IMG/VR virus record: IMGVR_UViG_3300009545_000018 | Location: 383,764 to 447,763 of that record | Reading direction: 5' to 3' (one strand) | Length of the DNA: 64,000 nt | Part shown: one piece after another, positions 34,896-64,000 of the stretch | How positions within the stretch are numbered: the first letter of the stretch is position 1 | Layout of the letters: each line of letters starts with the position of its first letter | Program-made: the position numbers and the translations under genes | Notes under the pieces: model-generated | Database searches by the model: none | What the model was told of the DNA's origin: nothing | Seen by the model: the letters and a program-made list of their open reading frames with translations, nothing else

Positions 34896-35135
34896 TTAAA
34901 ATAGTTTCCTAATGAATTTAATTAAATTACTACCTGCTGAGTAAACAGCTAATTTTAATTCTTTTTTTCCAGCTAATTTGTGTTTAACTCCTACTGGGGA
35001 GTGATGTTTATATAATTCAGCTGCTTGCTCTGGTGTTTCTGCTAAAACTCTATAAGTAACAGTGGCTGGTAGCATACATTCAACTTTTACATCAAAATAG
35101 AACTTTTGGGGAGGTTGTAATTTATCTTGTTTCAT
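34896..35135 (-). CDS. Hypothetical protein
   Basis: 79 aa ORF coupled to its neighbours. Confidence 0.6.
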   Translation of the reverse strand: MKQDKLQPPQKFYFDVKVECMLPATVTYRVLAETPEQAAELYKHHSPVGVKHKLAGKKELKLAVYSAGSNLIKFIRKLF

Positions 35136-36697: not shown

Positions 36698-36698
36698 T

Positions 36699-41600: not shown

Positions 41601-42676
41601 ATACATATCAAAAAATAATGGCTTGTGAAGATAAATTTCAAGCTATCCAAAAAATTATCTCAATAGATGAATTTACAAGAAGACTTTCAGAAATTGATCA
41701 TATTTGTAACGATCCTACTACATGGAATGATCATAAAGCTGCCGCACGTATCATGAAAGAACGGCAAAAAATATCTGATGTAATAAGTAAATATACTTAC
41801 TTTAAAAATTGGGTTCTCTTTTTTAAAGAGATAGTAAATGAACTTCCAGAAGAAATACAATCGTTTAGCCAAGAATCTTCTACTCTGCTATCAGAATTGT
41901 CTGCATTTGAGATTAGTCAGATTTTTAAAGAAGAGTCTGATGATTTGCCTGCTATCCTCTCTATCAATGCCGGGGCTGGTGGTTTAGAGGCAGCAAATTG
42001 GGTTACTATGCTCTTACGTATGTATGCTAGATATGCCAGTAATAATAATTTCAAAGTAGAAATTTTAGACACCAAACCATCTGAAGAGCATAGTTCTATT
42101 TGTACTGATTCAGTATCTATTAGAATAGAAGGTACTTATGCTTATGGTTTTTTTAAAAGTGAGTCTGGTGTACATAGGTTAATACGTAACTCTCCATTTA
42201 GTTCAAATGATACTAGACATACATCCTTTGCTGCCGTGTCTGTTATGCCAGATATAGAAGACACTATTGATATTAATATTTTAGATAAGGATTTAGAAAT
42301 AACTGCAATGCGGGCGGGCGGTAGTGGAGGACAACATCAAAATAAAACTAATAGTGCCGTTAGATTAAAACACTTGCCAACAGGGATTAATATTGCTGTT
42401 AGAGGTGAGAGAGATTATCATCAAAATAAAAGAACAGCTATGAAGATGTTGAAAGCTAAATTATATGAAATTGAGTTAAAGAAGCAACAAGAAGAAAAGA
42501 ATAAACATTTAGATGCTATGCAAGATGTAGCTTTTGGTTCTCAAATAAGAACTTATACTATGAGTCCCACTCAAATAGTAAAAGATCATAGAACAGATTT
42601 TGAATGTAATAATACTAATAATGTTTTAGATGGAGAAATTGATGATTTTATTAGTGCCTATTTGCATATGATGTAA
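41597..42676 (+). CDS. prfB: Peptide chain release factor 2 (no internal frameshift)
   Basis: AGAGGxEA, ESGVHRLIRNSPF (SPF specificity motif), RHTSF, GGQ, FGSQIRTY. Confidence 0.93.
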   Translation: MNTYQKIMACEDKFQAIQKIISIDEFTRRLSEIDHICNDPTTWNDHKAAARIMKERQKISDVISKYTYFKNWVLFFKEIVNELPEEIQSFSQESSTLLSELSAFEISQIFKEESDDLPAILSINAGAGGLEAANWVTMLLRMYARYASNNNFKVEILDTKPSEEHSSICTDSVSIRIEGTYAYGFFKSESGVHRLIRNSPFSSNDTRHTSFAAVSVMPDIEDTIDINILDKDLEITAMRAGGSGGQHQNKTNSAVRLKHLPTGINIAVRGERDYHQNKRTAMKMLKAKLYEIELKKQQEEKNKHLDAMQDVAFGSQIRTYTMSPTQIVKDHRTDFECNNTNNVLDGEIDDFISAYLHMM

Positions 42677-43679: not shown

Positions 43680-46600
43680 ATGTTTGATGTAAATGATCCA
43701 CATTGCTTAATTTGTAATAGACAATGTCGTGCTTTTATAGAAAACTTTTACTCCTGTGATCTTATGCCAGCTCATTATTTTTCAATAATGATCAAAGATA
43801 ATGTAATTAAACATATTCAAATTAGATTGGAAAATTTTTGCGCAACTTCCAATTATTCTTTGAATAAAACTTTTATTTGGAAGCATTGTGATAATAATTT
43901 AAATTGTTCCAAAATTATTATGTCTCCGGCAATGGAATTTGATTTTAATAATTATATTAAGATGTTAAATAAATTGAAAACCATAATTAATTTTAGTTGA
44001 TAATGTTACATATAAAAGTGATATTAAAACAAATGCCAATTAATTGTCCAATATGTAATGGACCCTTAGTCAATAACTTTAAAGAATATCCCAAAGGTAA
44101 TACATATGCAATGGATAAAAATTGTTTTCAAGCCAGCCATTACTTTTATTGTGCTTCTACAAAAGGTAAGGAAGATGAAGTTGCTTTTATTTGTATCGGA
44201 CTTGATCCATATAAAAAAGTAACGGCAAATTGGTTAGTCTTAGAAAAGAAATTATATATTTATGGTAATGAGTCTACCAATAATCGAAAAAATATCTCAG
44301 AAGTAAAAACGACATATATTCCATATGTTGAACCAGATTTTTCGGATCCTTTTAAATTAATTGACAAAATAAGATTATATTGTAAATTAATATAATCGTG
44401 TTATATGTCCATCATATGGATGATACTTTGCTGTGTCCTATCTGTGGCAGCAAGATGAGAAACCTTATTATGAATGATAAGTTTTGTTATCAAATTGGTA
44501 AAGTTCTCTCTTACATAGAGAGATCTTGTCATAATAAAGTAAATCATTATGTTCAAATGATTGTAGACAAGAGTTCTAAAAAAGTTTTTTGTGTAAAACT
44601 TCCTTTGAATCCACAATATTCTAAAACAATAGAAATAAATTTCTATAAAAGTGAATGTATTTTAAATCTTCTTAAAGATAAAATAAGTTATACTTTAAAT
44701 ATTCCTAAAATAATTGTGCCTGACTTTCCAAATCTAATTAAATTGAAACAACAAGTTAACTTATATTCTCTATTTTCATGAGGTGATATATATAAAGTAT
44801 GATAAATTGTCAAGTCTGCGGACAAAATCTAGTGAGATCAGGCAATGCAGAAATATATACTTGTATGTCTTCTTTCCATTGGATTGAAACTTATAATAAA
44901 TATATAGAATATAAACACTTTGCTTGTCATTTTAAAGATAGTAAAATATTATATAAGGTTGTAACAATCTATCCATATTGTTTCAAAATGTTTTATGAAG
45001 ATAATAAAACTAGAATATCTAAATCCATTGTCAGGTCTGAAATTAAGAAAAATGGTAAAGAGACCGCTTACTCTTCTGAAGAAGTTAATATTTTAGAAAT
45101 TGATTCTATCATAGAATTTCCTTGGTCTAATAAAGATCAAGTGCTTGATAAATTAAAATTATATTCTATCTTTTCATGAACTATCAATGTCATTATTGTA
45201 ATAAAAATTTAGAAAGAACCTCAACTGTTACATTGTCTTGTATTGGAACAGGAAATTACATTATTAAATGTTTAAATTGTTTTAAAACTAAAATAAAATT
45301 TAAGGATTATAATATTTTTGATGTAATTCTAGTTGGTAATAATTATAGTTGTCTAAAATTTTCTAATAGTTTTGATAGTAATAAAAGTTGTATAGAGGTA
45401 AATTCTTCCGAACATTTATATTTAAATAAGTGTTTATCTTATGAAGATTGTATATTAATCTTTAAAAAATTTAACAAAATATCTGCTTTCTTATGATTTG
45501 TCCTATTTGTAACTATAATTTATCTAAAAGTGACCTTCATGAAGGCGTCTTTATTTGTCAACAAGAAAAGAAAGTAAAACATATTTTTATGTGTTATTTT
45601 TCTTTATCTGAACCAGATATTCTAGAAGATTATTATATAGAAGTTTCTTCTCTTAATTTAAATATTGATGGTTACCCCACTGACAATGAAACTCATATAA
45701 CTTTTAATAAGAATACAATAATTTTCTCATATATAGATTATTGTGACGCCTTAGAACTCTTTAATAAAATAAAGAAAATGTATATATTTACTTAATTATG
45801 TTATGTCCCATCTGTAATAATCCATGTTCTCCTAAATTAACTACTAAAAATAATATTATTGGTGTATCTTGTGAAATAATTACAATTAGTAATTATTATC
45901 ATATATTTATTTATGCTTCTGAAGACAATTTTATGCTGGCAATATATTACACTACCCTTGAAGAAGAACAATTTATAATTGTTGGCTGTTACAATGATAG
46001 TAATTCTGTAAATTTTATTTTTTCTATAAAAAATAAAACCTTTTTAATACCACAATTTAATCCCTGTTCTTCTTTAGAAGTAATAGATAAATATTTAAAT
46101 ATGAAGGCATTTATATAATGTGTCCTATTTGTTTTGAACCTCATCCTTCTCATAAAGTTAGATTTAATCATAGGTTTGTTTATATAAATGACTTTCATTG
46201 GTCTCTTTCTATACATTATAAAAATACTACTATAGAAATTAGCAGAGAATGTCCTAGTAATGGTTTTAATTATAATTATTATGTTTATTTACAGATCGGC
46301 TCAAACGAATACCAATTACCAGAATTTGAATTGTGTAATACTTTAGAAGTATTAAATAAATTTATGAAAATTAAATCATTTGCATAATTATTTTTAATTG
46401 CTTTATCGATTATCATGATTATAGTAGTGCTGATATAAAATTTTCAATGCATTGTCCAATTTGTAATAAATTTATAACGCCTGACGCCGATGCCATCAGA
46501 GTATGTCGAGGTAATAATCCAGAGGGATTTCATCATTTTTATTTTGAAAACCCAACTAATTTTAGTTTATTTTTTGAAAATGTAGAACTCCATGCCCTTA

Positions 46601-47589
46601 ATAATAAATATACTTTTATAGTCGAAGAGCCCCGCCAAATAATAAAAATTAATTTAGATAAAATTGAATATTGTGAAATTATGGAAATTATAGATAGATA
46701 TATGAAAATGTTGGTTTTTTCATGAATTGTCCCATTTGTCAGCTATCTATGACACTTATTAAAATAAATAATAAAGATGAAAGATTTCGCTGTGAATCAA
46801 ATAAGCAACATTATTGTGTTTATTATTTAAATGGACTTACTTGGTGGGTGCAACATAATAACATGGAAATTGAATATGATCATCTATTTGGTTGTAGTTT
46901 AATTGTAAATGATGAATCAGGTATAGAACACTATTACAGAATAGATTATAATGTGTCTTTTCAAGATGCACCAAAACTTTTAAAATTGAAAGCTTTTTTA
47001 TGAATTGTCCAGTTTGTAATCAACCTATGATTTATGTAAAAGAAGATGAAGGTGGTCCGCAAACCTTTAATAGAAATAAATGTAACTATCGTCCTGACCA
47101 TGATACTAGGCATTATGATGATGGTGCCTGGTTTACAAAATTAAATAATATTCAAATAGGACATAATCTAGATGATCCTAATCTTTCCAACTTCTATGTA
47201 AGAATAATTGGCGAACATGAAACCTCCTTTTTAAATATTGATGCAATATCTTTTGAAGATAGTTATAATTATCTTATTAAATTTTCGAAATTGAAAGCCT
47301 TTCTATGAATTGCCCCATCTGTAACCATCAAATGGAAGAAAGATATAAATATTTAGCTCCCACAGGAATTTTCTTTAGATGTATCCAATTCTCACAACAG
47401 CATGATACCGTTTTTATTAACGAAAAAGAATGGACCGTTAGATATAACAGTATCATTTTGTTTACAATAAATAGTTTGTTTTATTTAAAATTTTCCACCA
47501 ATAGTCAAAGCATTAATATTCCCAATATTCCTTTTAATGAATCTTTTAAATGTATACAAAAATATCTTAAATTACAAAGCTTTACATGA
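43680..47589 (+). CDS. Tandem run of 12 small Zn-ribbon genes (starts 43680, ~44033, ~44416, 44799, 45176, 45493, 45798, 46118, 46447, 46722, 47000, 47305)
   Basis: M-x(0-2)-CPxC or related N-terminus, downstream C..H, variable beta middle, K-hydrophobic-x-x-F-x tail; ATGA/TAATG overlaps. Confidence 0.8.
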
Positions 47590-47642
47590 TCTGCCCCTTT
47601 AATATTCTGCAACGTTATATTAATTTATCAGCTTTCTTATGA
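47586..47642 (+). pseudogene. Mini-gene MICPFNILQRYINLSAFL (deleted array member)
   Basis: Keeps the family N-terminus and tail; ATGA overlaps on both sides. Confidence 0.6.
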
Positions 47643-49291: not shown

Positions 49292-49904
49292 AATATAATG
49301 TCATAGGATGCTGTCAAAGGGAGCAAAGTGTTAGAAAGTGGGAGGGTGTGGGAAGATAGCTGAATTAATGTCTTTTAATGTTTTGGCTGTCATTTGGGGT
49401 GGAATAGGATAGAAAGAGAAGATAAGTTATACTTTGATTTAGAAGGTTTAAGGAGGAAAGTAAGATTTTGGATTGGTTTGAACTGTATTATAGAGCTTAT
49501 AGATGGTTTGATGTGTTTAAAATAGCTGTAGACCGGGTCCCCAGCCGCCTCGGACCGTCAAACTCCCCACCTTTTCACTGCTGCTACAATACAGGGTTTG
49601 GCATACTCTCTGCATTATTCAATTAACATACCAATTATTCTTTTATAAGTCTTATTAATTAATTATACTTACATTACAATCATTTAATAAACATTATTAA
49701 TCATTTATGGCATCTTTCTTGCTTTCGCTGTTATTTTGCCTCACTGAACAGCTTTTCAGCCCTTTTAGTAGTCTTGGTACAGTAACTGCAAGATGCAAAG
49801 CCTATACCATGCCATAGCAGTCATTCCAGTTACACTGCACTTACCCATCTTTTAACGGTTAGTACCTGATTAATGTAGCGGGTAGCTGAGATAAGGAGAT
49901 TACT

Positions 49905-50096
49905 ATGGCACAATTCAAGATTTTGTCTCAAGTCAATGGTTCTTGGTTGGAGCAGGGGAAAGATCTCGGCGGTACTACTGTTATGAATCAAGCTGCTCAA
50001 TTGGAAAAGCAGGGATTGAATGTTCGAGTTTTCCGAACTGATATTCCCAAGTTCATTTATGAAACGGGAGCAGGATACCACGGAATCTGGTACTGA
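49905..50096 (+). CDS. First small gene of the motif block
   Basis: AAGGAG SD; follows motif 49844; ends before a terminator. Confidence 0.75.
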   Translation: MAQFKILSQVNGSWLEQGKDLGGTTVMNQAAQLEKQGLNVRVFRTDIPKFIYETGAGYHGIWY

Positions 50097-50102
50097 AAGA
50101 AT

Positions 50103-50130
50103 AAAGGAGCCTAAGGCTCCTTTTCTTTTT
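50103..50130 (+). terminator. Intrinsic terminator
   Basis: AAAGGAGCC-TAA-GGCTCCTTT with T tract. Confidence 0.85.
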
Positions 50131-50244
50131 ATCTTTGTGGTATAGGATTTGCTTATTGCAATTAATATACCAAGACTTTTTAGATAAAAGAGCTCTACCC
50201 ATCCTATAACGGAATCAAAGCAGCTATTGTAAGGTAGGTATCAT

Positions 50245-50616
50245 ATGGAATTCACCTATGAGAATGATGAAGGGGAAGACATTACAGTCACCTTCCCTAG
50301 TGTTAAGGTAGTTTGCCCAAGGTGTAAAGGGCACGGAACCCACCTTCACAATGATATTGGTAGCTATGCTTACAGCGTAGAAGAATTCCAAGATTCCTTT
50401 GATGAAGAAGAACAGGCAGAGTATTTTCGCCATGGTGGAAGATATGACGTTCTCTGCGAACGCTGTCACGGTAAAAACGTGGTGGATGAGATTGACGAAG
50501 AGAAGTGTCAGCAGGATCCGGCTTTGACAGAAGCCTGGCAAGCTTTTTGTCAGAAAGAAAAGGATGATGCTGATTATGAAAGACTCTGTGAATCAGAGCG
50601 GCGCTTTGGTTGCTGA
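50245..50616 (+). CDS. Acidic protein with CxxCxGxG Zn finger
   Basis: CPRCKGHG...CERCHGK. Confidence 0.75.
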   Translation: MEFTYENDEGEDITVTFPSVKVVCPRCKGHGTHLHNDIGSYAYSVEEFQDSFDEEEQAEYFRHGGRYDVLCERCHGKNVVDEIDEEKCQQDPALTEAWQAFCQKEKDDADYERLCESERRFGC

Positions 50617-50653
50617 TTGAGATCCCATCCTATAACGGATTACTGCTAATAGT

Positions 50654-53199
50654 ATGACAACCCTGCAGAATCTCAAGAAGCGTGACTTGTCTTTTGCTTA
50701 CCAGATTGCAGTGGCAGACTGGAAAAAACTTTCTGCTATGTGTTCTGGGCAGTCAGCTGACGATCTGGCTAATGGCTTTCATGGTAAGTCATTGGCTGGA
50801 GTGCTGTTTGATTCGGAATTGGCAGTGGATCAGATTGCAGCTAAGCTGGATCGGTTGAATCCTTAAGGGATTGAAAGGGAGGTTTACCTCCCTTTCTTTT
50901 TAATTGATGCTGGTATGCCGTTTGCATATTGCAATGTTCGAGCCAACCGTCATAAAGTTTGCTTTAAACTTGTTCCCATCTGATAACGGATAGATCCTAA
51001 TAGTATAGTTTTTCTGAGGGTTCTGACTAAAAGTAAAACCCTCCCCCTTTACGTTGCAAACAGTAACTGTAGTAGGCAATAAGCTTCCAGTTATATTGTA
51101 ACAAAGTTTGGCGGTATCTTAAAACCGCCACATTTTTTAATCCCATCATTTAACGGAAAGGTCTAAGTAATATGAATACTCTTTTTAAGTTGGTTGTTGT
51201 GATGTTGGCATTGTTTGCCGTGACTTTCTTGATTCAAACCTATGCCAATTCTTGGTTTCATCAAGTGGCATTCACGGCTCCTATCATTGGAACCATGAGC
51301 TATGCAGCTTGTACCATTGTGGCAGTAGGTTGTGTGTTGCTGTCAAAGCTGCATTGGGGCAAGTAATGTTAGGTTTCGTGGTGTTTTGCCTGGTAGGTTT
51401 TTTTACTGGGCATTGGGTAGTGGGTGGTATTATTGGAATTGTAGTATACGCCCTAAATAAGTAACTCCCATCAATAAACGGTTGAATGTTATTGATATGA
51501 CATATCATCCCAGTTACCGAGCAGTAGATTCTGTTGGTACTGAATGTGAAACTTTTGAACATGAGTATCAAGCGGTAGACTATTGGACTGGTGCTCCTAC
51601 TGGAATTGATATTCAATATTGGAATGGTTCTGAATGGGAAGAATATAATCCTAGGACTTTCACTAAAGATTAATTCCCATCAATTAACGGATTGTACCTA
51701 GTTATTGAGATGCAAAACCTAAAAGACCGATTGGAAAAGTTAGCAGATTCTTTTAAGGGTACTACCAATTCTTTTGGTAGGTTTACCGTCACCAATGTAG
51801 GTTGCGGGATTCTGAGAGTTGATGGTGAAGGTGTGCAGTATACTCCCGATGTAATATTGGGTTTTCTCAATCGACACGGCATTAAGTAATTCCCATCAAT
51901 AAACGGATTAGATCTATTAGAAAGGATAAAAAAGATGAAAGCATTCAATTGTTATATTGTCAAGCGCAAGGGCAAAGTCATCAAGGGTGAGAGTCGCAAG
52001 CTGCGCAATGCAGCCAAGCGACAACGTCAAGGTCGCTAAACCAAAAGAATGAGAGCTTAATTGTTCTCATTCTTTTTTAATTGGTCTTGGCATATGCTTT
52101 GCAACTTGCAATAAGCTTGCCAGGCGTTATATTTTTATATCCCATCTATTAACGGAAAGACATACTAAGTGGAGGCTGGTAATGTTCATTAAGATTAAAG
52201 CTTTGTTCAAGCTGTATGATCTGGGAATCATTAGCAGCGAACGTTTATCCGAAGCCTTGGTAAAGCTCTCCCCATCTGATAACGGATAAAGATTATTAAT
52301 TATGAATACTCTAGAATTCAGCCGAGCTTGCCGAACAGAGTTTGCTGCTTTGCCGGAAGCCTATCGTAATGACGATGTCTTGGAATTCTGGTTTGAGGGT
52401 GGGCTTTGGTATTGCCGCCCCAAACTATCAGAAGTAACAATTCTAGGAAACTGGGAATGTTATTATAGTGATGGTGTATGGGAGAATCAAGAAGCCCATC
52501 TTTAAACGGATGATAGGAGTCTAATATGAAAGCCAGGACTCAGTATCTGATTAATGTTTATGTCACGTTGAATAGTGCTGGTCGTAAGGATCAATTCCGC
52601 CGGGGTCGTTACAATGACCCGGAACACTCTGCCATAGCTTGGGGTGGGGTTCATGGTCCTCTTTTGGGCTGCGAACCTTCCGCTGAGGAATTGCAAGAAT
52701 TGGTAACAGAGGGTTACATTACAGTTAAGTCCAATGGCGCTGTAACTCCTACAGCTAAAGCTAAGGCGGCTAGGACTGGAAGCTTAGGCAGTATTAGTCC
52801 TTAATACCAATGAATAGTTTAGAGCCTAAAGAGACAGAAGATCAACGCAGAGCCCGATTAGCATCAAGAGAAGATCTAGCGTGTTTAGAGTGCCACCATA
52901 GGGTTTGCTTATACTTTTGCTCTAAGAGAGTTAAAAAGCGTCCCATCAAGTAACGGATTAGTGTATCTAATATGAAGTACCTAGATGAAAAGTCTGTTAC
53001 TGCAGTGCGTCGAACTAAGCCTCTAGCAGTTAGGACTAGGTCAGGATATGGGAGTAAACTTCCAACTGATATTATGCTGCAATTGAATAAGCGTTGGTAT
53101 CGGGTCTATGTGATGATCTATTCTAATGCTGGTTCGGCATATATCTTGCAAAAGGGAGAAAAGGTTTTGCTTGGGTCCTATGATCCTCAACCCATCTAA
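50654..53199 (+). CDS. Small motif-associated genes: 50654-50866, 51172-51366, 51366-51464, 51497-51673, 51710-51889, 51935-52039, 52182-52289, 52302-52505, 52526-52804, 52810-52953, 52972-53199
   Basis: Each starts just after a motif or is coupled to the previous gene; products unknown (two are hydrophobic). Confidence 0.65.
50873..50901 (+). terminator. Intrinsic terminator
   Basis: GAAAGGGAGG/CCTCCCTTTC with T tract. Confidence 0.85.
51005..51138 (+). ncRNA. Candidate small structured RNA
   Basis: ORF-free unit between motif 50975 and a terminator; stems GAGGGTT/AACCCTC, GTTGCAA/TTGTAAC, TAACTG/CAGTTA. Confidence 0.5.
51109..51138 (+). terminator. Intrinsic terminator
   Basis: TGGCGGT/ACCGCCA with T tract. 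Confidence 0.75.
52043..52078 (+). terminator. Intrinsic terminator
   Basis: AAAAGAATGAGAGC/GTTCTCATTCTTTT. Confidence 0.8.
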
Positions 53200-53210
53200 T
53201 AACGGATTCC

Positions 53211-53241
53211 AGGGGAGCTGTAATGGCTCCCTTTTCTTTTT
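53211..53241 (+). terminator. Intrinsic terminator
   Basis: GGGAGCT/GGCTCCC with T tract. Confidence 0.8.
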
Positions 53242-53330
53242 GGTGGGGTGGCAAGGCTTTTGCATATTGCAAGGCTCGTGCCACGCCCCAATAACAACCC
53301 ATCTATTAACGGATTAATAGGTATTATGTA

Positions 53331-53446
53331 TCCGATTGGTTGGCACCTTTTTAGTTAGTAGTGAAACATAATTCATTAGCTTTCACTGGCAATTAATGAA
53401 TTATGTTCTGACTAAAACTAAGGTTCGATTCCTTAGAGTCGGGCTA
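53331..53446 (+). ncRNA. tRNA-like RNA with greatly extended central arm
   Basis: CCGATT/AGTCGG acceptor-like stem, TAAGG-TTCGATT-CCTTA T-arm, long central stem. Confidence 0.55.
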
Positions 53447-53479
53447 ATTCCCATCTAATAACGGTAGAATATAATTAAT

Positions 53480-56400
53480 ATGAATCGCACTAAGCAAAAC
53501 CTAGATTCTGCTAAGATGCTGGTTGCTAAAGCTCTGGCTATTCTGGCGCAAGCTGGTTTGGCTCAACGATAGAGAAGACAATGAAAAAGCCCAATCAAGA
53601 ATTGTTTCGGCTGCTTCGTTTTGCCATTCGTTTTCCAGGCTGGCACTCTTACGATTCCAGTGTAGCTAAACATATCAAAAGGGCAGCTGCATTGGAATTT
53701 CTGGAAGTTGATACCAAAACCAAACAATTCCGATTGATGCCAAGTCAATGGGCGGAAGACTTTCGCAAAGGTCCCATCGTTTAACGGTTGAGGGTATCTA
53801 ATATGAATCTCAATAAAAGAATCAAGCTGGATCGTTCCTTCGAACTAGCAGAAGATTCTGCTAAGCCTGATATTACTGGAACCATTGTGGGCTTGGGACA
53901 TATTGTCGGCATAACAGTTTATATCGTGGAACTGGATCAAGGTTTCTATTCGCCAGATAGGCGAATCTATATTAGCAGAATGGTAGTAGCAAGGGAAAGC
54001 CTTCGTCCCATCGAATAACGGGTGAAGGTAACTAACTGGGGACTGAAACCCGAGCTGACCGAAAGGAAAAGCTCCATATAGTATTACTGGATGAGATCCT
54101 AATCCGGGTTGTAAAAGAATAACGGTTGGTACCGTTTACAATCATGTCGAAAGACCTTAGGCTGGCGAAGTAAGTCCCCATCATTTAACGGCGGAAGATT
54201 AATAACATGAGGAAAAACGCTCAAAAGGTTCTGCAAGCTTTCAATGCTGGGCAGGCTGCTAATGAGAAAACCATTAGCACCAATGGTAAGGAATTGTTTT
54301 CCTACGCCATGTTGATCGCCCGCAAGAATGGCGATAAGGTAGAGCTTATCGATTATAGTAAAGCTCCCAGCAACACTACCCGCAGTCAGGTTAACGCAGT
54401 GCGGCAATTCTTTCCTGCTAGTCAGATTGTGGTAGTGGAGAGTTTCTAAAAACAAGTTTTCCTAAAACTTGTTCCCATCCTTTAACGGAATAAGGCTCTT
54501 ACCATGAGAGTTGGTCCTGCTACACTATCCTACTTGAAACGTTTGGGCGATGAGGAAGCTGCTTTGATGTTGAAAGCCGGTTCATTGGTTTTCAGTCAAG
54601 CTCAAAAAGCAGGTTTGACGCCGGGTTTCTTTTTCATTCAAGGGCAACTGAGAATGGTGCCAGTACCCAAAACCTTTGCAGTGAGTCCCATCTTCTAACG
54701 GAAGGATCCTTCTAATATGGAAGAGTTAATGGATCGAGCCCGGGAATGGGTCAATGAGAATTATCCTCACTTGGAAGGCGATGACTATTCCGCCAAGCTA
54801 GAAGAGACACTATGGGATCTGGCGGAGATTGATGGCACGGATCCTATTAACTATCTGACTTATTATAATTAATTACACTAAAGCAATAATTGAGGTTTAA
54901 TGATTCGAGCCCCGCCGAGCTAGGCGTCTCTAATGTTTAATAATAGTTGATTGAATTTATAAGATTACAGTTTGAGAGGAATGGGGAGAAGGCGACCTTC
55001 TCCCCATTCCAATGTTATACATTGGTATAGGCTTTGCATCTTGCAATCCTTATACCAACCTTGCTATTATCTTTCCCATCCAATAACGGAAGCATTCAAT
55101 TAGATATGACAATTAGTTATCACAAGCGAGACTTGCAACATGCCCAAAAGATTGCAGAAGCAGAAAAGTACCATATCCTGAGTTTCAGTGACGGTGCAAA
55201 CTCCGCGGAGCATCTAGTTCGGGTAGTAGAACTGGAAAACGATCTTCGTCGTATCTCTCAACAATTGAATCCCATCAAGTAACGGCTAGAGACATAATAT
55301 AAGAAACATGGCAAAGTCAAACAAGTACTGTAGGGATTGTGAGTGTTATCATCCGGCAGGCGATTGTAATGGTAATGATCGTCGGCAAGATCATAAGAAG
55401 CGAGAAAAGGTCAAGCAAGCCGAAAGCCCCATGTTCTTCTATGATCAAGATCCAATGTTGATGGATCCATAAAAACCTGTTCCCATCTGATAACAGTTAA
55501 TGTAAGTGGTTGTATCATTGAACGCGGCGTAAAAGACTATAATTAATAAGGTTCACGCGGGAAAAAGATAGTCTTTCCACTTTTCCATCTAATAACGGCT
55601 CCTAGATACTAATTGAAAGAATAAAGACAATGTTTTATGTAACCAAGAATGACGCGCAATACATCATGGCTGCCCTGCTGATTCCGACCCTGCTGGGCTT
55701 TTACTCTCTCTGCCTTTACTTCTAAAAACTTAATAGGCAGTTTAGAATAGCTGCCTATCTTTCTTCCGGTTTAGCTCAGTTGGCAGGGAAACATTAATGA
55801 CAGCTAATTGGTTGCATAATGTTTCCCATCCATTAACGGTTGAAGGTGTCTAATATGACTTGGAATAAAGAACAGATTAGGATTGCCATTCAAACCCGTG
55901 ATGTTGTGGTAGAGCGTGCCATTGTTGCTATCTATCAACGTCAGACACTAGACGAACAATCCTCAGAAGAAACCAAGCATTCTAATGGAGTTGGTTTTAG
56001 TGGGGCGCATGCACGTTTGGGCACGTATTATGCCAAGTGGATTCTTCAGGGACGTCACTTAACCGGAAACCATCTAGTCAAAGCTCGTGCCATGGCATTG
56101 CATTACGTAGGACAATTAGAGCAGATTGCTGCACAAGTTTAATTCAAACTTGTTCCCATCTATTAACGGATTGATATTACTAATATGGATTACCTAACTC
56201 GTAACATTCAAGACACTGGTAGCAAAACGGTTTTGATGCCAGCCAGCCACGTTCGTGGGAGCACCATTATCTTTTGGACTTGCTGTGTGTTCTGGACCAT
56301 TGCCGCCATTGCTTATCACAGCATGCACTGAACCAAGATGCATATCTTCCTGTTAGTCATTATGGCATACTGTCATGTCTCCTGGGAATCTACCGATAGG

Positions 56401-57052
56401 GGACAGCCTGTTTATGATGCTAACGGGTATAACTACAGTGACAATGTTATCTCCTGTCATATCGATCCCATTGAGGATAATATAACAGAACAACGTCACC
56501 ATATTACTTGCTGGGGCACTGATAAGCAGGTAGTGGTAGATCGGTCCTTGCATTGTGATAAGCAGCAGATTGAAGATTACATTGAAGTGCAAAGCTTATT
56601 CTTAGGCTGTAAGTATCACTGAATGTTAGGCATTATTCTTGCCGCTGTAATTCCGATAGTAATACCAGTTATTATTAATTGTTTGGATTACTTCATAGAT
56701 TAAATCCCATCTGATAACGGAGAAGGGTTTGTAGGCATTATCAAGAGGGAATTTATATTACTGAACATTCCAATATGTTGGAGTTGATTAATCGTTGCAA
56801 TAAGCTTGCAACCTTACAGACAACTATTACATGGATGTATGTAGTTGTCTGAGTTTATAACGGCACTGTAATGGTGCCGTTTCTTTTATGCGCGTGTTGG
56901 TACGTGCTTTGCATATTGCAATAAGCTTGCCAACCATCCGTCAAGCCAAATTATTATCCCATCTAATAACGGAAGGATACACGTAAATGAAGCTAAAGTT
57001 AATAGGTCAAGGTACACACACTCGTAAGGGTGCCGCAATCTATGGCGACTAA
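53480..57052 (+). CDS. Small motif-associated genes: 53480-53572, 53581-53784, 53803-54018, 54207-54449, 54504-54698, 54717-54872, 55106-55282, 55308-55472, 55630-55725, 55855-56142, 56185-56331, 56338-56622, 56987-57052
   Basis: Starts re-assigned to the ATG about 15 nt after each motif where present; products unknown. Confidence 0.65.
54037..54180 (+). ncRNA. Candidate multi-stem structured RNA
   Basis: Closing stem TGGGGACT/AGTCCCCA, GAAA tetraloops, several nested stems. Confidence 0.6.
54978..55010. terminator. 15-bp perfect hairpin without a U tract
   Basis: GGAATGGGGAGAAGG-CGA-CCTTCTCCCCATTCC. Confidence 0.6.
56736..56887 (+). ncRNA. Candidate small structured RNA
   Basis: ORF-poor unit after motif 56706; GTTGCAA/TTGCAAC and CAGACAACTA/TAGTTGTCTG hairpins, then a terminator. 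Confidence 0.4.
56859..56887 (+). terminator. Intrinsic terminator
   Basis: AACGGCAC/GTGCCGTT with T tract. Confidence 0.8.
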
Positions 57053-57149
57053 TCCACATAGGTTGTTCTGATTAGAGAATAGCTTTAAAAGCTCCGAACA
57101 CTTTAGCTTCCCATCCTATAACGGTTTCATACTCTGATTGAGATACACA

Positions 57150-57518
57150 ATGAAGATCGAATGTACCACTGAGGAATTGGTAGCGCTGCAACGTACCACG
57201 GAACTGGAATCCTTGCAATATGAAGTAGTAGCATTGCGAGAACGGAATTCTTCCCTGGAAGATCGGATCGCTAACCTGAAGGATCACAACACTGACCTAC
57301 AGCGGGAATTGGTGAAGCCGGCAGCTACTATTAATGGCGCCAGTATGCAGCAAGTTTCGGATCTGTTCAAGGTATACTTGGGTGGTGCCAATAGGGAAAC
57401 CCCTATTGGAGCCCAAAAGATCGCTGCTATCAAAGCCGTTCGTGAAGTTTTCAAGTGCGGATTAAGGGAAGCCAAGTTTATCATTGAAGGTAACTTGGAA
57501 AACGAGCGATACGGCTGA
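57150..57518 (+). CDS. Coiled-coil protein with ribosomal protein bL12 (L7/L12) C-terminal-like domain
   Basis: KIAAIKAVREVFKCGLREAKFIIE matches the bL12 KIxxIKxVRxxxGxGLKEAKxxVE signature. Confidence 0.7.
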   Translation: MKIECTTEELVALQRTTELESLQYEVVALRERNSSLEDRIANLKDHNTDLQRELVKPAATINGASMQQVSDLFKVYLGGANRETPIGAQKIAAIKAVREVFKCGLREAKFIIEGNLENERYG

Positions 57519-57556
57519 ATAAACTTCCCATCCTTTAACGGTTGATTGCATTCAAT

Positions 57557-60500
57557 ATGGATCCTGAGCAATTGATTCAGCAAAGCGCGGCTTCTGGGGA
57601 AACCATCAAGATTGATTGGAATGTCAAAGTGTTTTCTCACTTGATGCGCCGGTCTCCTATTTACACCGAATATACAACCTTCACGGAATTCCAGGGTAAA
57701 GAATTGGATAAGTCCTGGTGTATCCAATTGATACATTAACCCATCCTTTAACGGTTAGAGACACCTAACATGACATTCGATAAAGGACAGCGAGTCAACA
57801 CTCCTAATGGTCTTGGTACTATTAATTACCAAAGGATGGTACCGCCCGATTACAGTGAAGCTATGATAGTTTCTGTCTTTCTGGATTCTCGCCAATTGGA
57901 TCGGGACTTGGGAAAGTATTCTGGAACTATCTTTCCGGCAGATGTTGTTACTCCCATCCAATAACGGACTACTAATAATAGTATAAGACAAATGGTAAAA
58001 ACCAACCACCATAACGAATGGTTTCGACCCGTTACCAAAACCACTTGCTCTTGCGGTCAAAAGAAAACGCAAGTTTATAGTTGGGGAGAATATGTGTGTG
58101 CCAAGTGGCGCACCATTGACTATGTGTGTCAAAACTGTTTTCCGATTGTAAGCGAACGTTTACAGCAGCATAAAAAGGAATGCGGCTGTGAATTTAAGCT
58201 AATTGGTTATCGCGGCTGTAGTTTGCCTGACTGGCTTAAAATGCCTGTGCAATCTTGCCAGTTTTCCCATCAAGTAACGGTTGAAGATGTCTAATATGAC
58301 TAAGCAACAAGCTCTGCAGGACTTTAAAGAAAACGTACTGCCGGCAGTCAAACAGCAATATCCACATGATAAGCATGCTGTTATTCAAGCTTGGAATGAT
58401 TACACTGACAGCTTGTGTAAAGACCGGCAGATTACCGCCAAGCAATACCATAACTGGTCCAATCCTTTTTGAGCCTCATGTCTAAGTGTGAACATGTATT
58501 TCCACGTGTAGCTAATTACGAGTTATTAGGCACTGGTGGCAAAAGGATTATATGGTCCTGCAATAACTGTCTTTCCATCAAGGTTCACTTCATTAATGAT
58601 GTAAAAGTTAATGATAAATGGACTACATATGAAAAAACAGTCATAGTAGACTGTTTAGATTACGATCCTGATCCCATCCAGTAACGGTTAGGTACAACCA
58701 ATATGACAACTATGTATCTAATACGCGATACCACTGGCAAGATATTGTCGAGTTGCTCTTTCAATTCCGTTGCAGCTTTATGTGAAGCAGTTAAGGTCTG
58801 GCATTATTTGGGCAACATTAGCGCCGATAGCTATGGTGTTGTAGTTATCTTTTAGTTCCCATCCTATAACGGCTAGGTACAATTAATATGAGCCAGTTAT
58901 CCGAAGCCCTAAAAAAAGTCGCTGCTATTGCATCTTCTACCTACCTAGGAGAAGAGACTGAAAAGTATAGTCAAGGCAGCGGTACTTACAAGGTTAATAA
59001 GTGGAAAGTAGAATTGTCTTTCCAGGGGCGCCGATATACTTGTCCCTTATATAAGACAGGTGAAGGTCTTCGAAAGAAAAAGTACAGCTTTAATAGCAAG
59101 CTGGGACAATGGGGTAATTTTCCCGTTGCAGGATCAAACCACCCTGATGTAGCTGACGTTATTCATTGTCTGATTACTGATACTCATTGCGGCATGATGG
59201 CATTCGACGAGTATTGCAGCGAGTTTGGACTTGATACTGATTCCCGTGCTGCTTTCAAAGTGTGGGAGCAATGCGTGGAAACTGCTGGACCTTTTAGACG
59301 GTTTCTAGGTTCGGAGTTTGATCATCTGTCAATGTTGGAACACTAATGAAAACTTACAGGCTCAAAGAAAACCATCCCACCTATCAGAAATTTCTTAAGC
59401 TATATAATCTAGCTGAGAAGTTAGGTATCTCTCTTGAATTTATTGGAGATCAATGTTTTTTGGTAGATTTTGATCTGCCTAAGATACGGTTTCAAGTGAA
59501 AGATATAGAGCCTAATCATATCTTAACTTCGTTTCCTTATCCAACGGAATTTGAGATTACATATCAGAAGCCCCATCCATAGACGGAAGTGTGTATTTAA
59601 TATGCGCAACTATCAAAGCATGATTGAGCGACGAAAAGCGGAATTCCAAGATCATTTCTCGGATGTTGGATTGTCCAAACAGTTCATTCAATATTACGAG
59701 AATGGCAAGCGTATCAAGGTGCGGTTTCCCGATGGTCGTACAGAGTGCGGTACCGTTGGAGTTACAACCGGTTGGGTCCCTTGCTTTCTGCTAATGCATC
59801 GCAGTACTGATACTGGAAGCTCTACAGTCTTGGCAGACATGGATAAGATTGTGGGCGTGCAAGTCAGTAAGAAGTACGTTACGCCGTGAATGGAAAAGGA
59901 GCATCTGCTCCTTTTCATTTTGCCCAATATGGTATGTGCTTTGCATATTGCAGCATTCGTACCACTACCTCCGGGGCAAAAAACAAACTCCCATCACATA
60001 ACGGGTTGATACTAAAGGTAAGAGATATGAAAGTTAAAGTGTTTCCCGTCAATGGCAGCTATACTATCTGTGCGGTTTTACCTAACGGCAGCATGGATCC
60101 GCATTATCCTGCTATTACGGATATTGCGCATCATGGTAATGCGCAATACATTGCGGACAGAATCAATGAGGCTTATCGGGCGGGTGAAACCAATAAAGCC
60201 ATTGAGATTCGAAAAGTCTTGGGTCTTTTATATTAATCCCATCTTCTAACGGATGAATGCAATTAATATGGCAAAACAATATCCCTGTGATGGTTTTACT
60301 CGACTCACAGAAGAATCAGACTTGGTTCCAGGTACCGTGCTTCGCATGGTTAACTTTATCGATAACCCTGCTGTTAGCGCTCCCTTTTCCGATTGTGTCA
60401 TTACTAAAGTAGAAGATGGTATTGTCTACCTGAATCGTCCCATGGGATGGTCCAATGGCAAAACTCATACAGAAGAGTTTTGTGCCTACACTACCAGGGT

Positions 60501-62428
60501 TGTCAAGTTCTGGCATACTGTACTGACCGCTAGTGGTAAGCCTTATAGTATGTTTGGGGTGTAGTTCCCATCCTGTAACGGAACCAGTATATTAATTATG
60601 GATAGATTTACAAGGTGTCTGCTACTAGGTCTATTCTTCTTTGTTCTAAACGTTCTTTTATATAAGATGTTTAGGTTGGTTTATTGGGAACGTACAGTCA
60701 TTACCTCTATAGTAGCACTTTATGTCGGTTGGTTTCATGGCAGTTGGTTTTTCAAAAAAAGAAATAAACCCATCCAGTAACGGATATTATCTTCCTATTG
60801 TAAGAAAGTAAAAGACAATGGAAATTCTTTCTCATTCTCGCAGTGTTAAGGTAGAACAATACAGCTTGTGTTTCGATTATATCGGAGCCAGCAAGCATCA
60901 TGGTTTCTCGTTTGACTGCAATGCAGCTGGAGAAGTAGATGTTGTGGCTTTGCAGAAAAAGCCGGCAGCATATGATAACTATCTGAAATGTCTGTCAGGC
61001 GAGCATAAGGTTCATGCTCCTTACGTTCAGGACTTTTCGCATCGTTATACCGAGCCGGCAGTAGGTCGGTGTGTCTGCGGCTGCAAAGTAGAATTGGCTC
61101 GTTTTACCAATACCTGCGATGGTTGCAATCGGGATTACAATTACAGCGGAGATCTTTTGGCACATAGAAGCCAATGGGGTGAGGAAACTGGGGAAAGCTA
61201 CTGTGATATTCAGGACCTGTAATGAAAAAGCGCAATCGCTGTAAGTGTAAAAAGTGTGGTACGATTATTGAATCCAAACATCGGCATGACTTTGTTTACT
61301 GTAGATGTAAGTCCATTTTCACTGATGGTGGAACTGATTACATTAGAAGGGGAGGAGATCTTTCTTTAATTGAGGAAGTTCCAGAAGATAACAACATCTC
61401 CTAACGGAATATATTATGAGTTACGAACTAAGCTTCAGTGAAACATTCTTCTTCGGCGAATGTGATCCCTACGAAACTGACATTACTGCAACACCTACCA
61501 GTGTGTATGCTGCTATCTGCTGCTGTAAGGAACTGGATCCTGACAAGTGGCAAGACATTGCAGCGGAAGTCTTTCAAGTAGAGCCGGATCTATTGACAGA
61601 GGAAGCTGTCATGAGAAAGATTCGTAAAACCGACACATGTTCTAACTTGAACGTGCCTGTACGGGTGTGGATAGATGAACAGGGTTGGTATAAACTAGAA
61701 GTGTATTGATCCCATCTGATAACGGTGGAGCATATCTAATATGAAGATTACAGCAGATCGTTTCAGTGAGCTATCTCTTTCGATTCAAGATCAAGCCACT
61801 AGTCTTTACAATAAGGCTTTTCGTTTGGGCTTTAATGCCGAGCTTGGCGCTAAAGATGGTGGCACTGAAACTGTCATTAGCATGATTACGGAACTGGAAT
61901 CTACCTTGCGGGTATTGAAACGACGCCTGCAGGAAACCCTCCCATCCTCTAACGGGTAGAGATACTTATTATGCAAGCCAGTCTTTGTGATTCAGATTGC
62001 AGTGAAAATGCTGTCATAGCAATCCTTCAAGGTGAAGGTGCTGCTAAGTTTGCCAAAGAGACATGTCAATCGCTCAATGGTAGCAACTGGGAATGTGATG
62101 GCAATGATTTTGCCTATTGTCTCACGGAAAACTGTCCAAGCTTATTGGAAGAATTCCAAAAAGACTTGGGCGATATTGAGATAAACGATTCTGAGTATAC
62201 TCCCATCACATAACGGATAATAAATATAATATGTTAACTCAAAAGGGAATGGAAATTCTGTTGAAGATGTATTCTCTACATCGCAGCAATTTCTTAGAAA
62301 CTCATGATGGTTGCAATCGGAATGATTGCGAGCGGGATTTTCTCCATAACATTCTGTCGAAAGTTTCCGGTAGTTATAACGAAATTGTCTATGCCAAGTT
62401 AGCTAACGAGATTGAAAGCATTCGATGA
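57557..62428 (+). CDS. Small motif-associated genes: 57557-57739, 57770-57964, 57992-58294, 58296-58472, ~58478-58684, 58703-58855, 58888-59346, 59346-59582, 59602-59889, 60027-60236, 60268-60564, 60598-60780, 60818-61222, 61222-61404, 61416-61709, 61741-61959, 61971-62213, 62231-62428
   Basis: Same unit architecture; several are Cys-rich Zn-binding peptides (57992, 60818, 61222). Confidence 0.7.
59893..59921 (+). terminator. Intrinsic terminator
   Basis: GAAAAGGAGC/GCTCCTTTTC then ATTTT. Confidence 0.75.
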
Positions 62429-62823
62429 AAGCTGTACTACTAGGATTGTTACTGTTAGGTTGCGGAGATCATGATAATCCTCCTCCGGAAGCCCCTAAGT
62501 TTTGCATTCAACCCGCCGCCACTTATGTAGAAAGTTTTAGTCCGGTCTATGGTAGTTGTCCAGGTTTACCATCAGTTTTGATTACCATTCCGGAAGATGG
62601 AAGTTTTCCAATCAATACGGATGAAACCTGTCATGTTAAGGTAGATGGTTGCAAGGCAGACAATACTGGGTGCGTGTATCAGAGTGACGGCTGCACTATC
62701 AAGTCTGATACCACTGTCACCTTTAAGGATGATGGTACTGCAGTAGGCTATATGACAGTATCGACAGCTAAGTGTGGATACGACTGTATGGGTATCTATG
62801 AGTTGTACTTAGTTAAGCAATAA
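62425..62823 (+). CDS. Cys-rich lipoprotein
   Basis: MKAVLLGLLLLG-C lipobox. Confidence 0.75.
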   Translation: MKAVLLGLLLLGCGDHDNPPPEAPKFCIQPAATYVESFSPVYGSCPGLPSVLITIPEDGSFPINTDETCHVKVDGCKADNTGCVYQSDGCTIKSDTTVTFKDDGTAVGYMTVSTAKCGYDCMGIYELYLVKQ

Positions 62824-62825
62824 CT

Positions 62826-63776
62826 ATGGAACTGGTAAAGTTAGGCGCTAAGCAAGGCACAGAATGCTGTACCTGTAGAAACAGGATTAAGCATAACGAG
62901 ATCTGTTATCGAAAACAACGCTTAGCCGAAACTTATCACGAACGATTACATGCTAACGGTAAAGGCATGGTTCAATGGTACCATCACAAGTCATGCATTG
63001 AAAAAATTCCCATCTGATAACGGATACCTACGAGTAATATGAGTAGCAAATGCACAGTTAAGAAAGCCAAAGAGTTGAATGCCTATGACATTAAATTCAA
63101 GCTAACGCAGGGAGAATTAATTGCATTGTACAATGCATTAAAACGATATTCCTCTGCTTCTACTGGAGGCGCGGCTGTACACGCTTATCTGTGTAATAGT
63201 TTGCAAGAGCTGTCTGTGGAACATGGCGTCAAGTTTCCCATCGACTAACGGAAGAGCTTATTTAATATGCTAAGTATGAAGGTAGAGACGGTTGTTAACG
63301 CACTAGTTACTCAATTGCTGTCAACGGATCTATATAATGAAGCAATTCATTTCCACTTGGATTGCCGGCTCAATTACTTTGAGGATGGCAAGCGTAATTA
63401 TCGAACGGCACGCGCCTTGCATTTGCTATATCAGCGTCATACGGGAAGCACCTATATCAGTGCCTTTTCTGCTGTCTTGGATAATCCATTCGATAAGATT
63501 GATAAGGTCAAAGATTGGAATCATGAATGCACTCATGACTACTGCTGGCGTAGTGTAAACTGTTTCTCTGCCGTCTATTTTTCTATGGCAGAAGATATTA
63601 ATCGTCAGTTGGTAAAAGCTGGATTGTCGGAAGTAGCACCCATTGATATGAGAGAGTTTAACTCTTTTGGTGGCATTAGCGGAAATGTTTTCCAATTGGT
63701 TCCAGTCAAGGTAGAACTGGATCCTACAGACAAGAATCATCATAGAAGGATGATAACAGTTTCTCCCATCCTTTAA
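62826..63776 (+). CDS. Three small genes (62826-63017, 63039-63248, 63267-63776)
   Basis: All end inside the next motif (IPI, FPID, SPIL). Confidence 0.7.
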
Positions 63777-63810
63777 CGGAATAGTGCTTAGATTATTACC
63801 AGGAAAGTAA

Positions 63811-64000
63811 ATGAATTATATTAAATTAAGTGTGTTGCAAACATTGGTTTTCTTGATCTGTGCAGTTGCTTGTGGGCAAACTCTGCAAACTACAAGCTTC
63901 TCCGAAGGAGGCAGTAATTCTGCCATTGGTGGCGAGTCTGGAAACCCAGCTATGCTGTCAATGTCTGGTGGAGTAGCAGAAGATCCATCTGTCGGGGGCG
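63811..64000 (+). CDS. Putative lipoprotein, 3'-truncated by window edge
   Basis: MNYIKLSVLQTLVFLICAVA-CGQ followed by a Gly/Ser-rich linker; AGGA SD. Confidence 0.6.
   Translation, partial: MNYIKLSVLQTLVFLICAVACGQTLQTTSFSEGGSNSAIGGESGNPAMLSMSGGVAEDPSVGG

Follow-up and report, generated by a model that had tools for sequence, protein, structure and literature searches.

A recurring 15-base motif heads the units of a small-gene array in a huge phage and may act as a per-gene transcription start signal that also lets units be shuffled between related phages

The closest documented analogue of the locus described here is the PeSL (promoter-early stem-loop) cassette of T4-type phages, which combines promoter, terminator and recombination roles (PMC2839356, PMC4122927). 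About 50 of these conserved repeats occur per genome, concentrated in regions of small genes of unknown function, where each lies between the stop of one gene and the ribosome-binding site and start of the next, is combined with terminators, and marks the borders of insertions, deletions and swaps between relatives. PeSLs are sigma-70 consensus promoters fused to a stem-loop. The promoters of single-subunit phage RNA polymerases (T7, T3, SP6 type) are near-invariant, strand-specific, short contiguous sequences ending in GG at the start site, with an A/T-rich stretch just before it and a specificity block further upstream; they number 10-20 per genome, their transcripts end at hairpin-plus-U terminators, and they normally drift with their polymerase. 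Sigma-54 (RpoN) promoters follow the consensus TGGCACRNNNNTTGCW (Barrios et al. 1999, as quoted in PMC4371752), and integrons carry gene-cassette arrays, one-directional rows of small, unrelated, mobile-looking units separated by a recurring attC site that folds as an imperfect inverted repeat, next to an integrase/attI/Pc module.

We analyzed a 64,000-nt window, the last 64 kb of the 447,763-bp phage contig Ga0105237_10000004, in which a preliminary description had noted 47 copies of CCCATC-N3-TAACGG dividing 14 kb into single-gene units. That observation is confirmed. The exact pattern occurs 40 times, all on the + strand and within 49844-63779, where about 0.01 sites are expected by chance. 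Allowing up to 2 mismatches gives 47 sites at the coordinates first described, with none on the - strand and none in 1-49843, against a chance expectation of 1.84 over the whole window on both strands. The two 2-mismatch sites (59572 and 61393) both lie at gene junctions, and an independent repeat finder recovers the same family. The copies, better written (T)CCCATC-N3-TAACGG, are spaced 102-807 nt apart and head units that together hold about 55 small + strand ORFs of 21-169 aa and at least 3 non-coding RNA units. The array is a distinct block of 42% GC against 28%, with many intrinsic terminators and all genes on one strand. The shift in GC occurs within a leader at 49531-49843 (+), of which 49531-49713 is conserved (74% identity) at the 5′ edge of L028, one of the independent arrays from metagenomes (denoted by L numbers) discussed below.

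The placement at gene junctions claimed in the preliminary description also holds. Within the window an ORF-opening ATG lies 14-16 nt after the motif in about half of the units and 19-54 nt after it in most others, and in 13 units the upstream ORF ends inside or just after the motif, 8 of them using the motif's own TAA. The term single-gene unit is roughly right: about 34 units hold one ORF, about 7 hold 2-3 translationally coupled ORFs, and 5 (50975, 53191, 53298, 54007 and 55482) hold none. Of these five, three hold RNA-like units. The unit at 50988-51136 (+) carries its own terminator, forms an operon on its own (palindrome, motif, RNA, terminator) and folds with z = -3.7; that at 53311-53449 (+) folds far better than shuffles (z = -5.1) and its 3′ end looks like a tRNA T-arm plus acceptor strand, although ARAGORN does not call it a tRNA; and that at 54020-54176 (+) lies in a stretch (54006-54191) that is 84% identical to an L028 unit, the aligned core differing at only a few positions, while the protein units shared with L028 are 34-85% identical. 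The unit at 55482 holds 102 nt that do not fold better than shuffles, and the motif copy at 53191-53205 (+) overlaps the stop of ORF 52972-53199 and is followed after 5 nt by a terminator, and this unit holds only a terminator plus the palindrome; the homologous site in L019 is degenerate. No tRNA gene was found in the window, and no known RNA family was found in the window at gathering score or in the array at E up to 1.

The cargo consists of small proteins of unknown function, 10 of 41 with PHROG matches, and the earlier proposal that these are early or host-takeover genes remains a conjecture. The gene shared by most arrays, at 50245-50616 (+), encodes a 123-aa protein with two CxxC pairs and a predicted DnaJ/BSD2-like zinc-finger fold, with homologs in arrays L006, L007, L018 and L028. 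We considered it as a candidate reader of the motif, but the fold points to a DnaJ/BSD2-type zinc finger and not a DNA binder, and the match is weak (E = 0.12). The last unit, at 63811-64000 (+), is an ORF with a signal-peptide-like start and a Gly-rich continuation that is cut by the contig end, such that the array may be longer. Three assemblies break at essentially this point, namely the 447,763-bp contig at 64000, a JGI 48.6-kb contig 5 nt later, and an ENA contig by coordinate inference, and attempts to walk beyond both array ends found that the contigs stop.

A second conserved element was missed in the preliminary description. After 24 of 28 terminators sits a symmetric site, TGGYAYR-N4-TTGCA-N3-TGCAA-N4-YRTRCCA, which is two inverted sigma-54-type consensus sequences fused head to head. 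Copies lie at 50138-50172, 50911-50945, 52088-52122, 53249-53283, 55023-55057, 56898-56932 and 59930-59964, each 13-17 nt after a terminator and 14-34 nt before a CCCATC site, and two further copies (49599-49633 and 49775-49809) are in the array leader. Each half matches the -24 GG / -12 GC consensus and its spacing: 10 loci in the array match TGGCACR-N4-TTGCW, with GG and GC 10 bp apart, on both strands, giving 28 matches in the window against 4.5 expected, and seven window copies have at least one half-site with 0 mismatches to the relaxed pattern TGGYAYRNNNNTTGCW. The element is orientation-neutral (centre TNT in 15 copies, ANA in 14), and because its variable positions pair no better than shuffles a hairpin or cruciform reading was rejected in favor of a protein site on DNA. 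No activator ATPase or rpoN was seen, and use of sigma-54 by a phage would be unusual. Intrinsic terminators (GC hairpin plus T run) lie on the + strand at 50102-50124, 50872-50897, 51106-51133, 52045-52074, 53210-53234, 55734-55757, 56859-56881 and 59897-59912, and together cut the array into at least 10 operons.

To place the array among its relatives we searched for the motif elsewhere. The same 12 fixed bases head units in at least 11 independent metagenome arrays and are the same at about 175 sites, in arrays of 40-51% GC whose shared proteins are only 32-98% identical. These arrays share homologous units in scrambled order: the window array and L028 share about 15 of 46 units, and blastn blocks begin at motif positions -2 to 0 and end at +14/+15 of the next motif. 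Across arrays an ATG lies 14-16 nt after the motif at 98 of 177 sites, but RNA genes also follow it, and in L028 a tRNA-Lys begins exactly at its terminal GG. In contrast, a search of IMG/VR found arrays only in this phage, 185,579 reference bacterial and archaeal genomes gave only single chance hits, and neither similar DNA nor the zinc-finger protein was found in isolated phages. A related 394-kb phage (release factor 48% identical) has no array near that gene, and a literature search with the motif letters returned only primer sequences.

The interpretation offered in the preliminary description, namely a promoter for a phage-encoded RNA polymerase, sigma factor or activator, or an integron-like recombination site, or both, is partly supported. 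Absence of motif-bounded gain, loss or reordering among relatives had been named as part of what would count against it, and such gain, loss and reordering is what we observe. The motif is neither a sigma-70 promoter nor a CRISPR repeat, as had been stated: its two blocks are 3 bp apart instead of the 16-18 bp that separate -35 and -10 hexamers resembling TTGACA and TATAAT, a consensus scan of the array finds 36 sites against 34.2 in shuffles, and no conserved sequence lies upstream, while the repeat is 15 bp, shorter than the 23-50 bp of CRISPR repeats, and the units are of 102-807 bp and mostly coding, unlike the non-coding CRISPR spacers of similar, uniform length. The statement that the window encodes no polymerase, sigma factor or recombinase agrees with Pfam scans of the larger ORFs; however, a sigma-70-family gene lies about 0.6 kb upstream of window position 1 on the same contig, at contig positions 382573-383202.

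We suggest, with a probability of about 0.5, that the motif is the invariant core of a compact per-gene expression cassette, most likely a class-specific promoter read by something other than the host's sigma-70-type holoenzyme, such as a phage polymerase or a phage-directed initiation factor. In this view RNA 5′ ends would lie at or near the terminal GG, followed by a C-poor leader of 14-16 nt with a weak Shine-Dalgarno-like stretch and then the ATG, and transcription would run on until one of the intrinsic terminators. Because the same 12 bases stand in front of every unit they would also act as a patch of homology, at which ordinary homologous recombination can insert, delete and reorder units as PeSL elements do. 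The motif itself, its positions and strand bias, its invariance in independent arrays and the motif-bounded shuffling are established by the analysis, whereas its action on DNA as a promoter, the position of transcript starts, and the homologous rather than site-specific nature of the shuffling are inferred. The promoter reading fits with the extreme, strand-specific enrichment in one compositionally distinct block, and with the absence of the motif from the 49.8 kb of ordinary phage genes next door, as expected for a temporal-class signal. All information lies in T-CCCATC-N3-TAACGG, with a sharp 5′ edge and only weak C-depleted sequence downstream, which is the asymmetry of a promoter ending at the start site, and the presence of the motif before RNA units argues against a purely translational signal and for an RNA 5′ end at GG. 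Furthermore, two terminators (51106 and 55734) are followed by motif-led genes with no other conserved element, and those genes need a promoter, and the phage encodes at least one sigma-70-family factor close by. However, the start-site placement rests on one tRNA and should be interpreted with caution; the symmetric sigma-54-like site could be the real operon promoter, making a promoter before every gene redundant; the 6-3-6 geometry fits neither sigma-54 nor the -35/-10 reading of a sigma-70-family factor, the only transcription factor seen; and one copy (53191) would fire straight into a terminator. The pattern T-CCCATC-NNN-TAAC-GG is compatible with a T7-type promoter, being near-invariant and strand-specific and ending in GG after an A/T-rich stretch (TAAC), but is shorter, has three free positions in the middle, is present in 47 copies in 14 kb, and does not drift between diverged relatives, which is unusual for phage-polymerase promoters. 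No polymerase gene was found in the about 84 of 448 kb that was read (the window and 20 kb upstream), and a scan of the contig for an RNA polymerase beta′ gene by back-translated NADFDGD patterns was uninformative. Relative to PeSLs, the motif likewise sits between small genes of unknown function in a variable region and marks the borders of exchange, but it has no -35/-10 and no hairpin or covariation, the terminator is a separate element paired with the sigma-54-like site, and the repeat is identical across much more diverged genomes.

The main rival, which we regard as possible but less likely, is an RNA-level signal. Here the sigma-54-like palindromes would be the operon promoters, and the transcribed motif would be recognized by a sequence-specific RNA-binding protein or endoribonuclease that cuts or protects the polycistronic RNA just before each gene or RNA, leaving 5′ ends at GG, as in PPR-defined mRNA ends in organelles or RegB/RNase III processing of T4/T7 early RNA. 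The operon architecture of palindrome, repeated motif-gene units and terminator, seen in 24 of 28 cases, is the main argument for it, and the motif is single-stranded in character, having no dyad symmetry and occurring on one strand only. It also precedes RNA units that would need to be released, with the tRNA-Lys 5′ end coinciding with GG, and some sites are preceded by small A/T hairpins ending in ACTTGTT that could protect a new 3′ end. On the other hand, a 12-base linear specificity is unusual for an RNase, operons at 51142 and 55825 follow terminators without a palindrome, the orientation-neutral palindrome is odd for a one-way promoter, and no covariation or structure exists around the motif. 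A translation signal, recruiting ribosomes in place of a strong Shine-Dalgarno sequence, is very unlikely. The position of the ATG would suit it, and the commonest leader 8-mer, TATCTAAT, is complementary to 16S rRNA 787-794, the best-matched 16S window; but only 9 of 97 leaders carry this 8-mer, the motif also heads tRNA and other RNA units, coupled downstream ORFs lack it, and short leaders already have Shine-Dalgarno-like strength close to long ones (-4.75 against -5.30 kcal/mol, with random sequence at -3.25). Complementarity of the motif itself to 16S rRNA, considered by eye, was dropped because it needs an indel, and a leaderless mRNA starting at the ATG, 16 nt after the motif, is weakened by the strength of the short leaders and because the L028 tRNA would be truncated.

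A dedicated site-specific recombination site, making the block a true integron-like cassette array, is also unlikely, and this half of the earlier interpretation is supported only in the weak sense of a shared homology patch. The reshuffled, motif-bounded units, the direct orientation of all sites, and the unit consisting only of terminator plus palindrome flanked by two motifs (53191-53298) would be consistent with it. However, the motif halves are not reverse complements, there are no inverted binding arms or attC-type folded repeats, the leader shows no pairing signal, and the 3-nt spacer takes 39 of 64 possible values among 176 sites, which is incompatible with an identical crossover core. 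No integrase or recombinase appears in Pfam scans of the window, including the 49 kb upstream of the array, or in the precomputed Pfam families of the genes called in the 20 kb before it, the downstream side lying beyond the contig end. Leaders of homologous genes differ between arrays, so breakpoints are not at one fixed base, and every unit carries its own expression signal, with the fixed distance to the start codon and the position before every gene that such a signal needs and a recombination site does not.

A more far-reaching scenario, doubtful but compatible with the evidence, is that huge phages of this clade carry a self-contained, exchangeable cassette expression array with its own two-level cis code: an invariant 15-base per-unit start signal, read by a so far unknown, deeply conserved initiation factor or polymerase whose promoter spans about -13 to +2, and symmetric sigma-54-type sites welded to terminators as operon punctuation. 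One and the same sequence would then be both promoter and recombination handle, a phage counterpart of an integron that needs no integrase, and possibly the first phage gene block run through sigma-54.

If the motif is a promoter, it defines a new and very strict transcription specificity, which could serve as an orthogonal expression part and would point to an undiscovered polymerase or initiation factor in huge phages. The sigma-54-like terminator-linked sites are a second unexplained regulatory element, and the 12 fixed bases make these arrays easy to find in metagenomes. The array shows how such phages keep a large, fast-changing stock of small accessory genes and RNAs, in which every unit brings its own identical signal and the signal itself is the place where units are exchanged.

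The motif CCCATC-N3-TAACGG noted in the preliminary description was confirmed as a genuine repeat. The exact pattern occurs 40 times, always on the + strand and only between 49844 and 63779, whereas dinucleotide shuffles give 0.01 occurrences. With up to two mismatches allowed there are 47 sites, the number originally reported, again all on the + strand and all within the same block. The same family was recovered by a repeat finder run without knowledge of the pattern. A position count over 130 sites from this and other arrays showed that all of the information resides in T-CCCATC-NNN-TAACGG, with nothing conserved upstream and only a weak, C-poor signal downstream.

The window forms the last 64 kb of a 447,763-bp viral contig. 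The first 49.5 kb is 25-38% GC (about 28% on average) and encodes ordinary large-phage functions: ribonucleotide reductase (nearest to Tenacibaculum and Cellulophaga phages and to a 642-kb uncultured phage), PhoH, thymidylate synthase, DHFR, dUTPase, collagen/DUF5907 fibre proteins, a release factor and homing endonucleases. The homing-endonuclease-type genes, of the GIY-YIG/NUMOD3 and LAGLIDADG types (31212-31835 and 35132-36793), lie among the nucleotide-metabolism genes. The release factor (41597-42676) is of the bacterial peptide chain type with PCRF and RF-1 domains, and a 48% identical copy is found on a 394-kb phage contig; long ORFs in the window read normally with code 11. A tight run of + strand genes encoding proteins of about 90-106 aa, several of them distant paralogues (23-29% identity), is seen in the AT-rich flank at about 45800-47590. 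Just outside the window, about 0.6 kb before position 1 (contig 382573-383202; positions 8334-8963 of the upstream sequence L269), lies a gene for a 209-aa sigma-70-family factor that contains regions 2 and 4 and matches TIGR02937 at 51.5 bits, above the cut-off. It is preceded by two Zn_ribbon_8 proteins, with a DnaB-type helicase and a TubZ-like tubulin further upstream.

At the edge of the array (49400-49800) the GC content rises abruptly to 41-42%, and it remains there to the end of the contig. The three assemblies that contain this junction between the 28%-GC body and the array may derive from the same reads, so that the junction is likely real but not independently proven. Isolated array contigs from other samples all break near the 5' edge of the array: those from five sequencing runs (L028, L029 and L257-L259) all begin within about 370 nt upstream of the first array gene, and L029 begins with a Nextera adapter sequence. 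This suggests a drop in coverage or variation at the 5' border, and could reflect sequencing bias against the AT-rich body, strain variation, or extra copies of the array. At the other end the contig stops inside an ORF (63811-64000) that is Gly-rich and has a signal-peptide-like start. Two other assemblies of the same phage end within a few bases of this point, probably because a repeat there breaks assembly, and the array may therefore be longer.

All genes of the array are on the + strand. Of 46 complete units, about 34 hold one small ORF (21-169 aa) and about seven hold two or three overlapping, coupled ORFs. Five units hold no ORF: those at 50975, 53298 and 54007 hold RNA-like units, that at 53191 holds only a terminator plus a palindrome, and that at 55482 holds 102 nt that do not fold better than shuffles. 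Across all arrays, the ORF-opening ATG lies 14-16 nt after the motif at 98 of 177 sites, and exactly 15 nt after it at 57, typically in the context YTAAT-ATG; the other sites have longer leaders, often with clear GGAG-type sequences. The commonest leader 8-mer, TATCTAAT, found in leaders such as 53788-53802, 52957-52971 and 61726-61740, is the exact complement of 16S rRNA 787-794 (the “790 loop”), the best-matched 16S window, although only 9 of 97 leaders carry it. Thirteen upstream ORFs end inside or just after the motif, eight of them on its own TAA, and TAA and TGA are the commonest spacers. Ten of 176 motifs are preceded by A(A/C)(C/T)TGTT (50966-50974, 54465-54473, 55473-55481 and 56146-56154 in the window, and six sites in the metagenomic arrays L013 and L028), often as the 3' arm of a small A/T hairpin.

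Ten of 41 encoded proteins match phage protein families of unknown function. The most widely shared is a predicted DnaJ/BSD2-like zinc-finger protein, and one protein has an L7/L12-like C-terminal stretch. The three RNA-like non-coding units fold better than shuffles. One of these (53311-53449; z = -5.1) has a tRNA-like 3' end, with a GGTTCGATTCC T-loop and an acceptor-like 3' strand, but also a long odd insert, and it is not called as a tRNA. Another is a 157-nt unit (54020-54176) whose aligned core differs from the copy in L028 (11014-11168) at only a few positions, making it far more conserved than the neighbouring proteins; its first and last core bases pair, and it has no Rfam match.

A second element, absent from the preliminary description, accompanies the terminators. 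Eight strong intrinsic terminators lie in the 14 kb of the array, against one convincing terminator in the 14.6 kb before it. The leaders in the array are Shine-Dalgarno-like, while start regions in the first 49 kb look no more so than random sequence (-3.4 against -3.25 kcal/mol). Thirteen to seventeen nt after six of the eight terminators (10-17 nt across all arrays) lies a 35-bp symmetric site, TGGYAYR-N4-TTGCA-N3-TGCAA-N4-YRTRCCA. Three further copies in the window follow a weak hairpin without a T run (55023) or lie in the array leader (49599, 49775), and a CCCATC site follows 14-34 nt later except after the first leader copy. Each half matches the sigma-54 promoter consensus TGGCACRNNNNTTGCW (quoted in PMC4371752), with 28 half-site matches in the window against 4.5 expected, the 20 paired ones sitting at 10 array loci. 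The variable positions of the two halves do not co-vary, from which we infer a protein site on DNA and not a hairpin, and the centre is TNT in 15 copies and ANA in 14, so that it has no preferred direction. Across all arrays, 24 of 28 terminators are followed by this site. The array is therefore a row of at least 10 short operons, with the layout palindrome, then motif plus unit repeated one to thirteen times, then terminator.

To look for relatives, the stricter pattern of the motif, 8-14 nt and TAATATG was used. It found only this phage in IMG/VR and only single chance hits in the reference genomes, but in metagenomes it found ten further contigs that are arrays from end to end, such as L006 (8.8 kb, 28 sites, 46% GC) and L007 (13 sites, 51% GC). 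A homologue search with the zinc-finger protein led to L028, which has 46 sites in 11.5 kb, extends to about 14 kb through L262 and L266, and begins with the same leader as the array in the window. The 12 fixed bases are the same everywhere, while shared proteins are 32-98% identical.

The array in the window and L028 share about 15 units, in thoroughly scrambled order. In the array L013 two genes are adjacent that are separated by two extra units in the window, L007 and the array L018 differ by one inserted unit, and L012 has three shared units in another order. Nucleotide homology blocks start at motif position -2 to 0 in eight cases and end at position +14/+15 of the next motif in four. Motif-bounded gain, loss and reordering of units, whose absence, together with a lack of transcript starts at a fixed distance from the motif, had been named beforehand as a ground for rejecting the proposed roles, are thus present among the relatives. 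The exchange looks homologous rather than site-specific: the motif has no inverted arms, its spacer takes 39 values, and leaders of the same gene can differ between arrays. No recombinase appears in Pfam scans of the window or in the precomputed Pfam families of the genes called in the 20 kb upstream, the remaining 364 kb of the genome lying outside the sequence read.

Three facts point to an RNA 5' end at the 3' edge of the motif: all conserved bases lie upstream of and including GG, the motif also heads RNA genes, and in L028 a tRNA-Lys (anticodon TTT; 6818-6913) begins exactly at the first G of that GG, its 3' end being followed by CAACTTGTT and the next motif. On sequence evidence alone such an end could be made by initiation or by cleavage. 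We favour initiation, and hence a promoter, since such strict, strand-specific, class-restricted repeats in phages are usually promoters, and since the layout of a specificity block, free positions, an A/T-rich TAAC and then GG resembles promoters of single-subunit polymerases. In addition, two terminators in the window (51106, 55734) are followed by motif-led genes with no palindrome, and the motif is absent from the neighbouring 49.8 kb. The sigma-70-family gene just outside the window shows that the phage has at least one such factor, but given that the 6-3-6 layout fits no -35/-10 geometry, this protein should be regarded only as a candidate. The main counter-argument is the palindrome: if it is the operon promoter, the motif would be transcribed and could be a processing or protection site. 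A purely translational role is unlikely, because RNA units carry the motif and short leaders already have Shine-Dalgarno-like strength.

The motif, its placement and strand, its invariance and the motif-bounded shuffling are thus observed directly, while promoter activity, the position of the RNA 5' end and the homologous nature of the exchange are inferred from sequence. The interpretation first put forward, of a promoter before each gene, an integron-like recombination site, or both, is supported in part: units are exchanged at the motif and a promoter is the favoured reading, but the array is not an integron. Nor is it a CRISPR array or a sigma-70 promoter set, in agreement with the preliminary description. 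As far as our searches show, the motif, its invariance across diverged phages, its density (47 in 14 kb) and the terminator-linked sigma-54-like sites are undescribed. The nearest described system is that of the PeSL cassettes of T4-type phages, among which the array cannot be counted because it lacks a sigma-70 promoter and a built-in stem-loop. In our reading it nevertheless works like these cassettes, which are conserved promoter-terminator repeats in front of small genes of unknown function, at which modules are exchanged.
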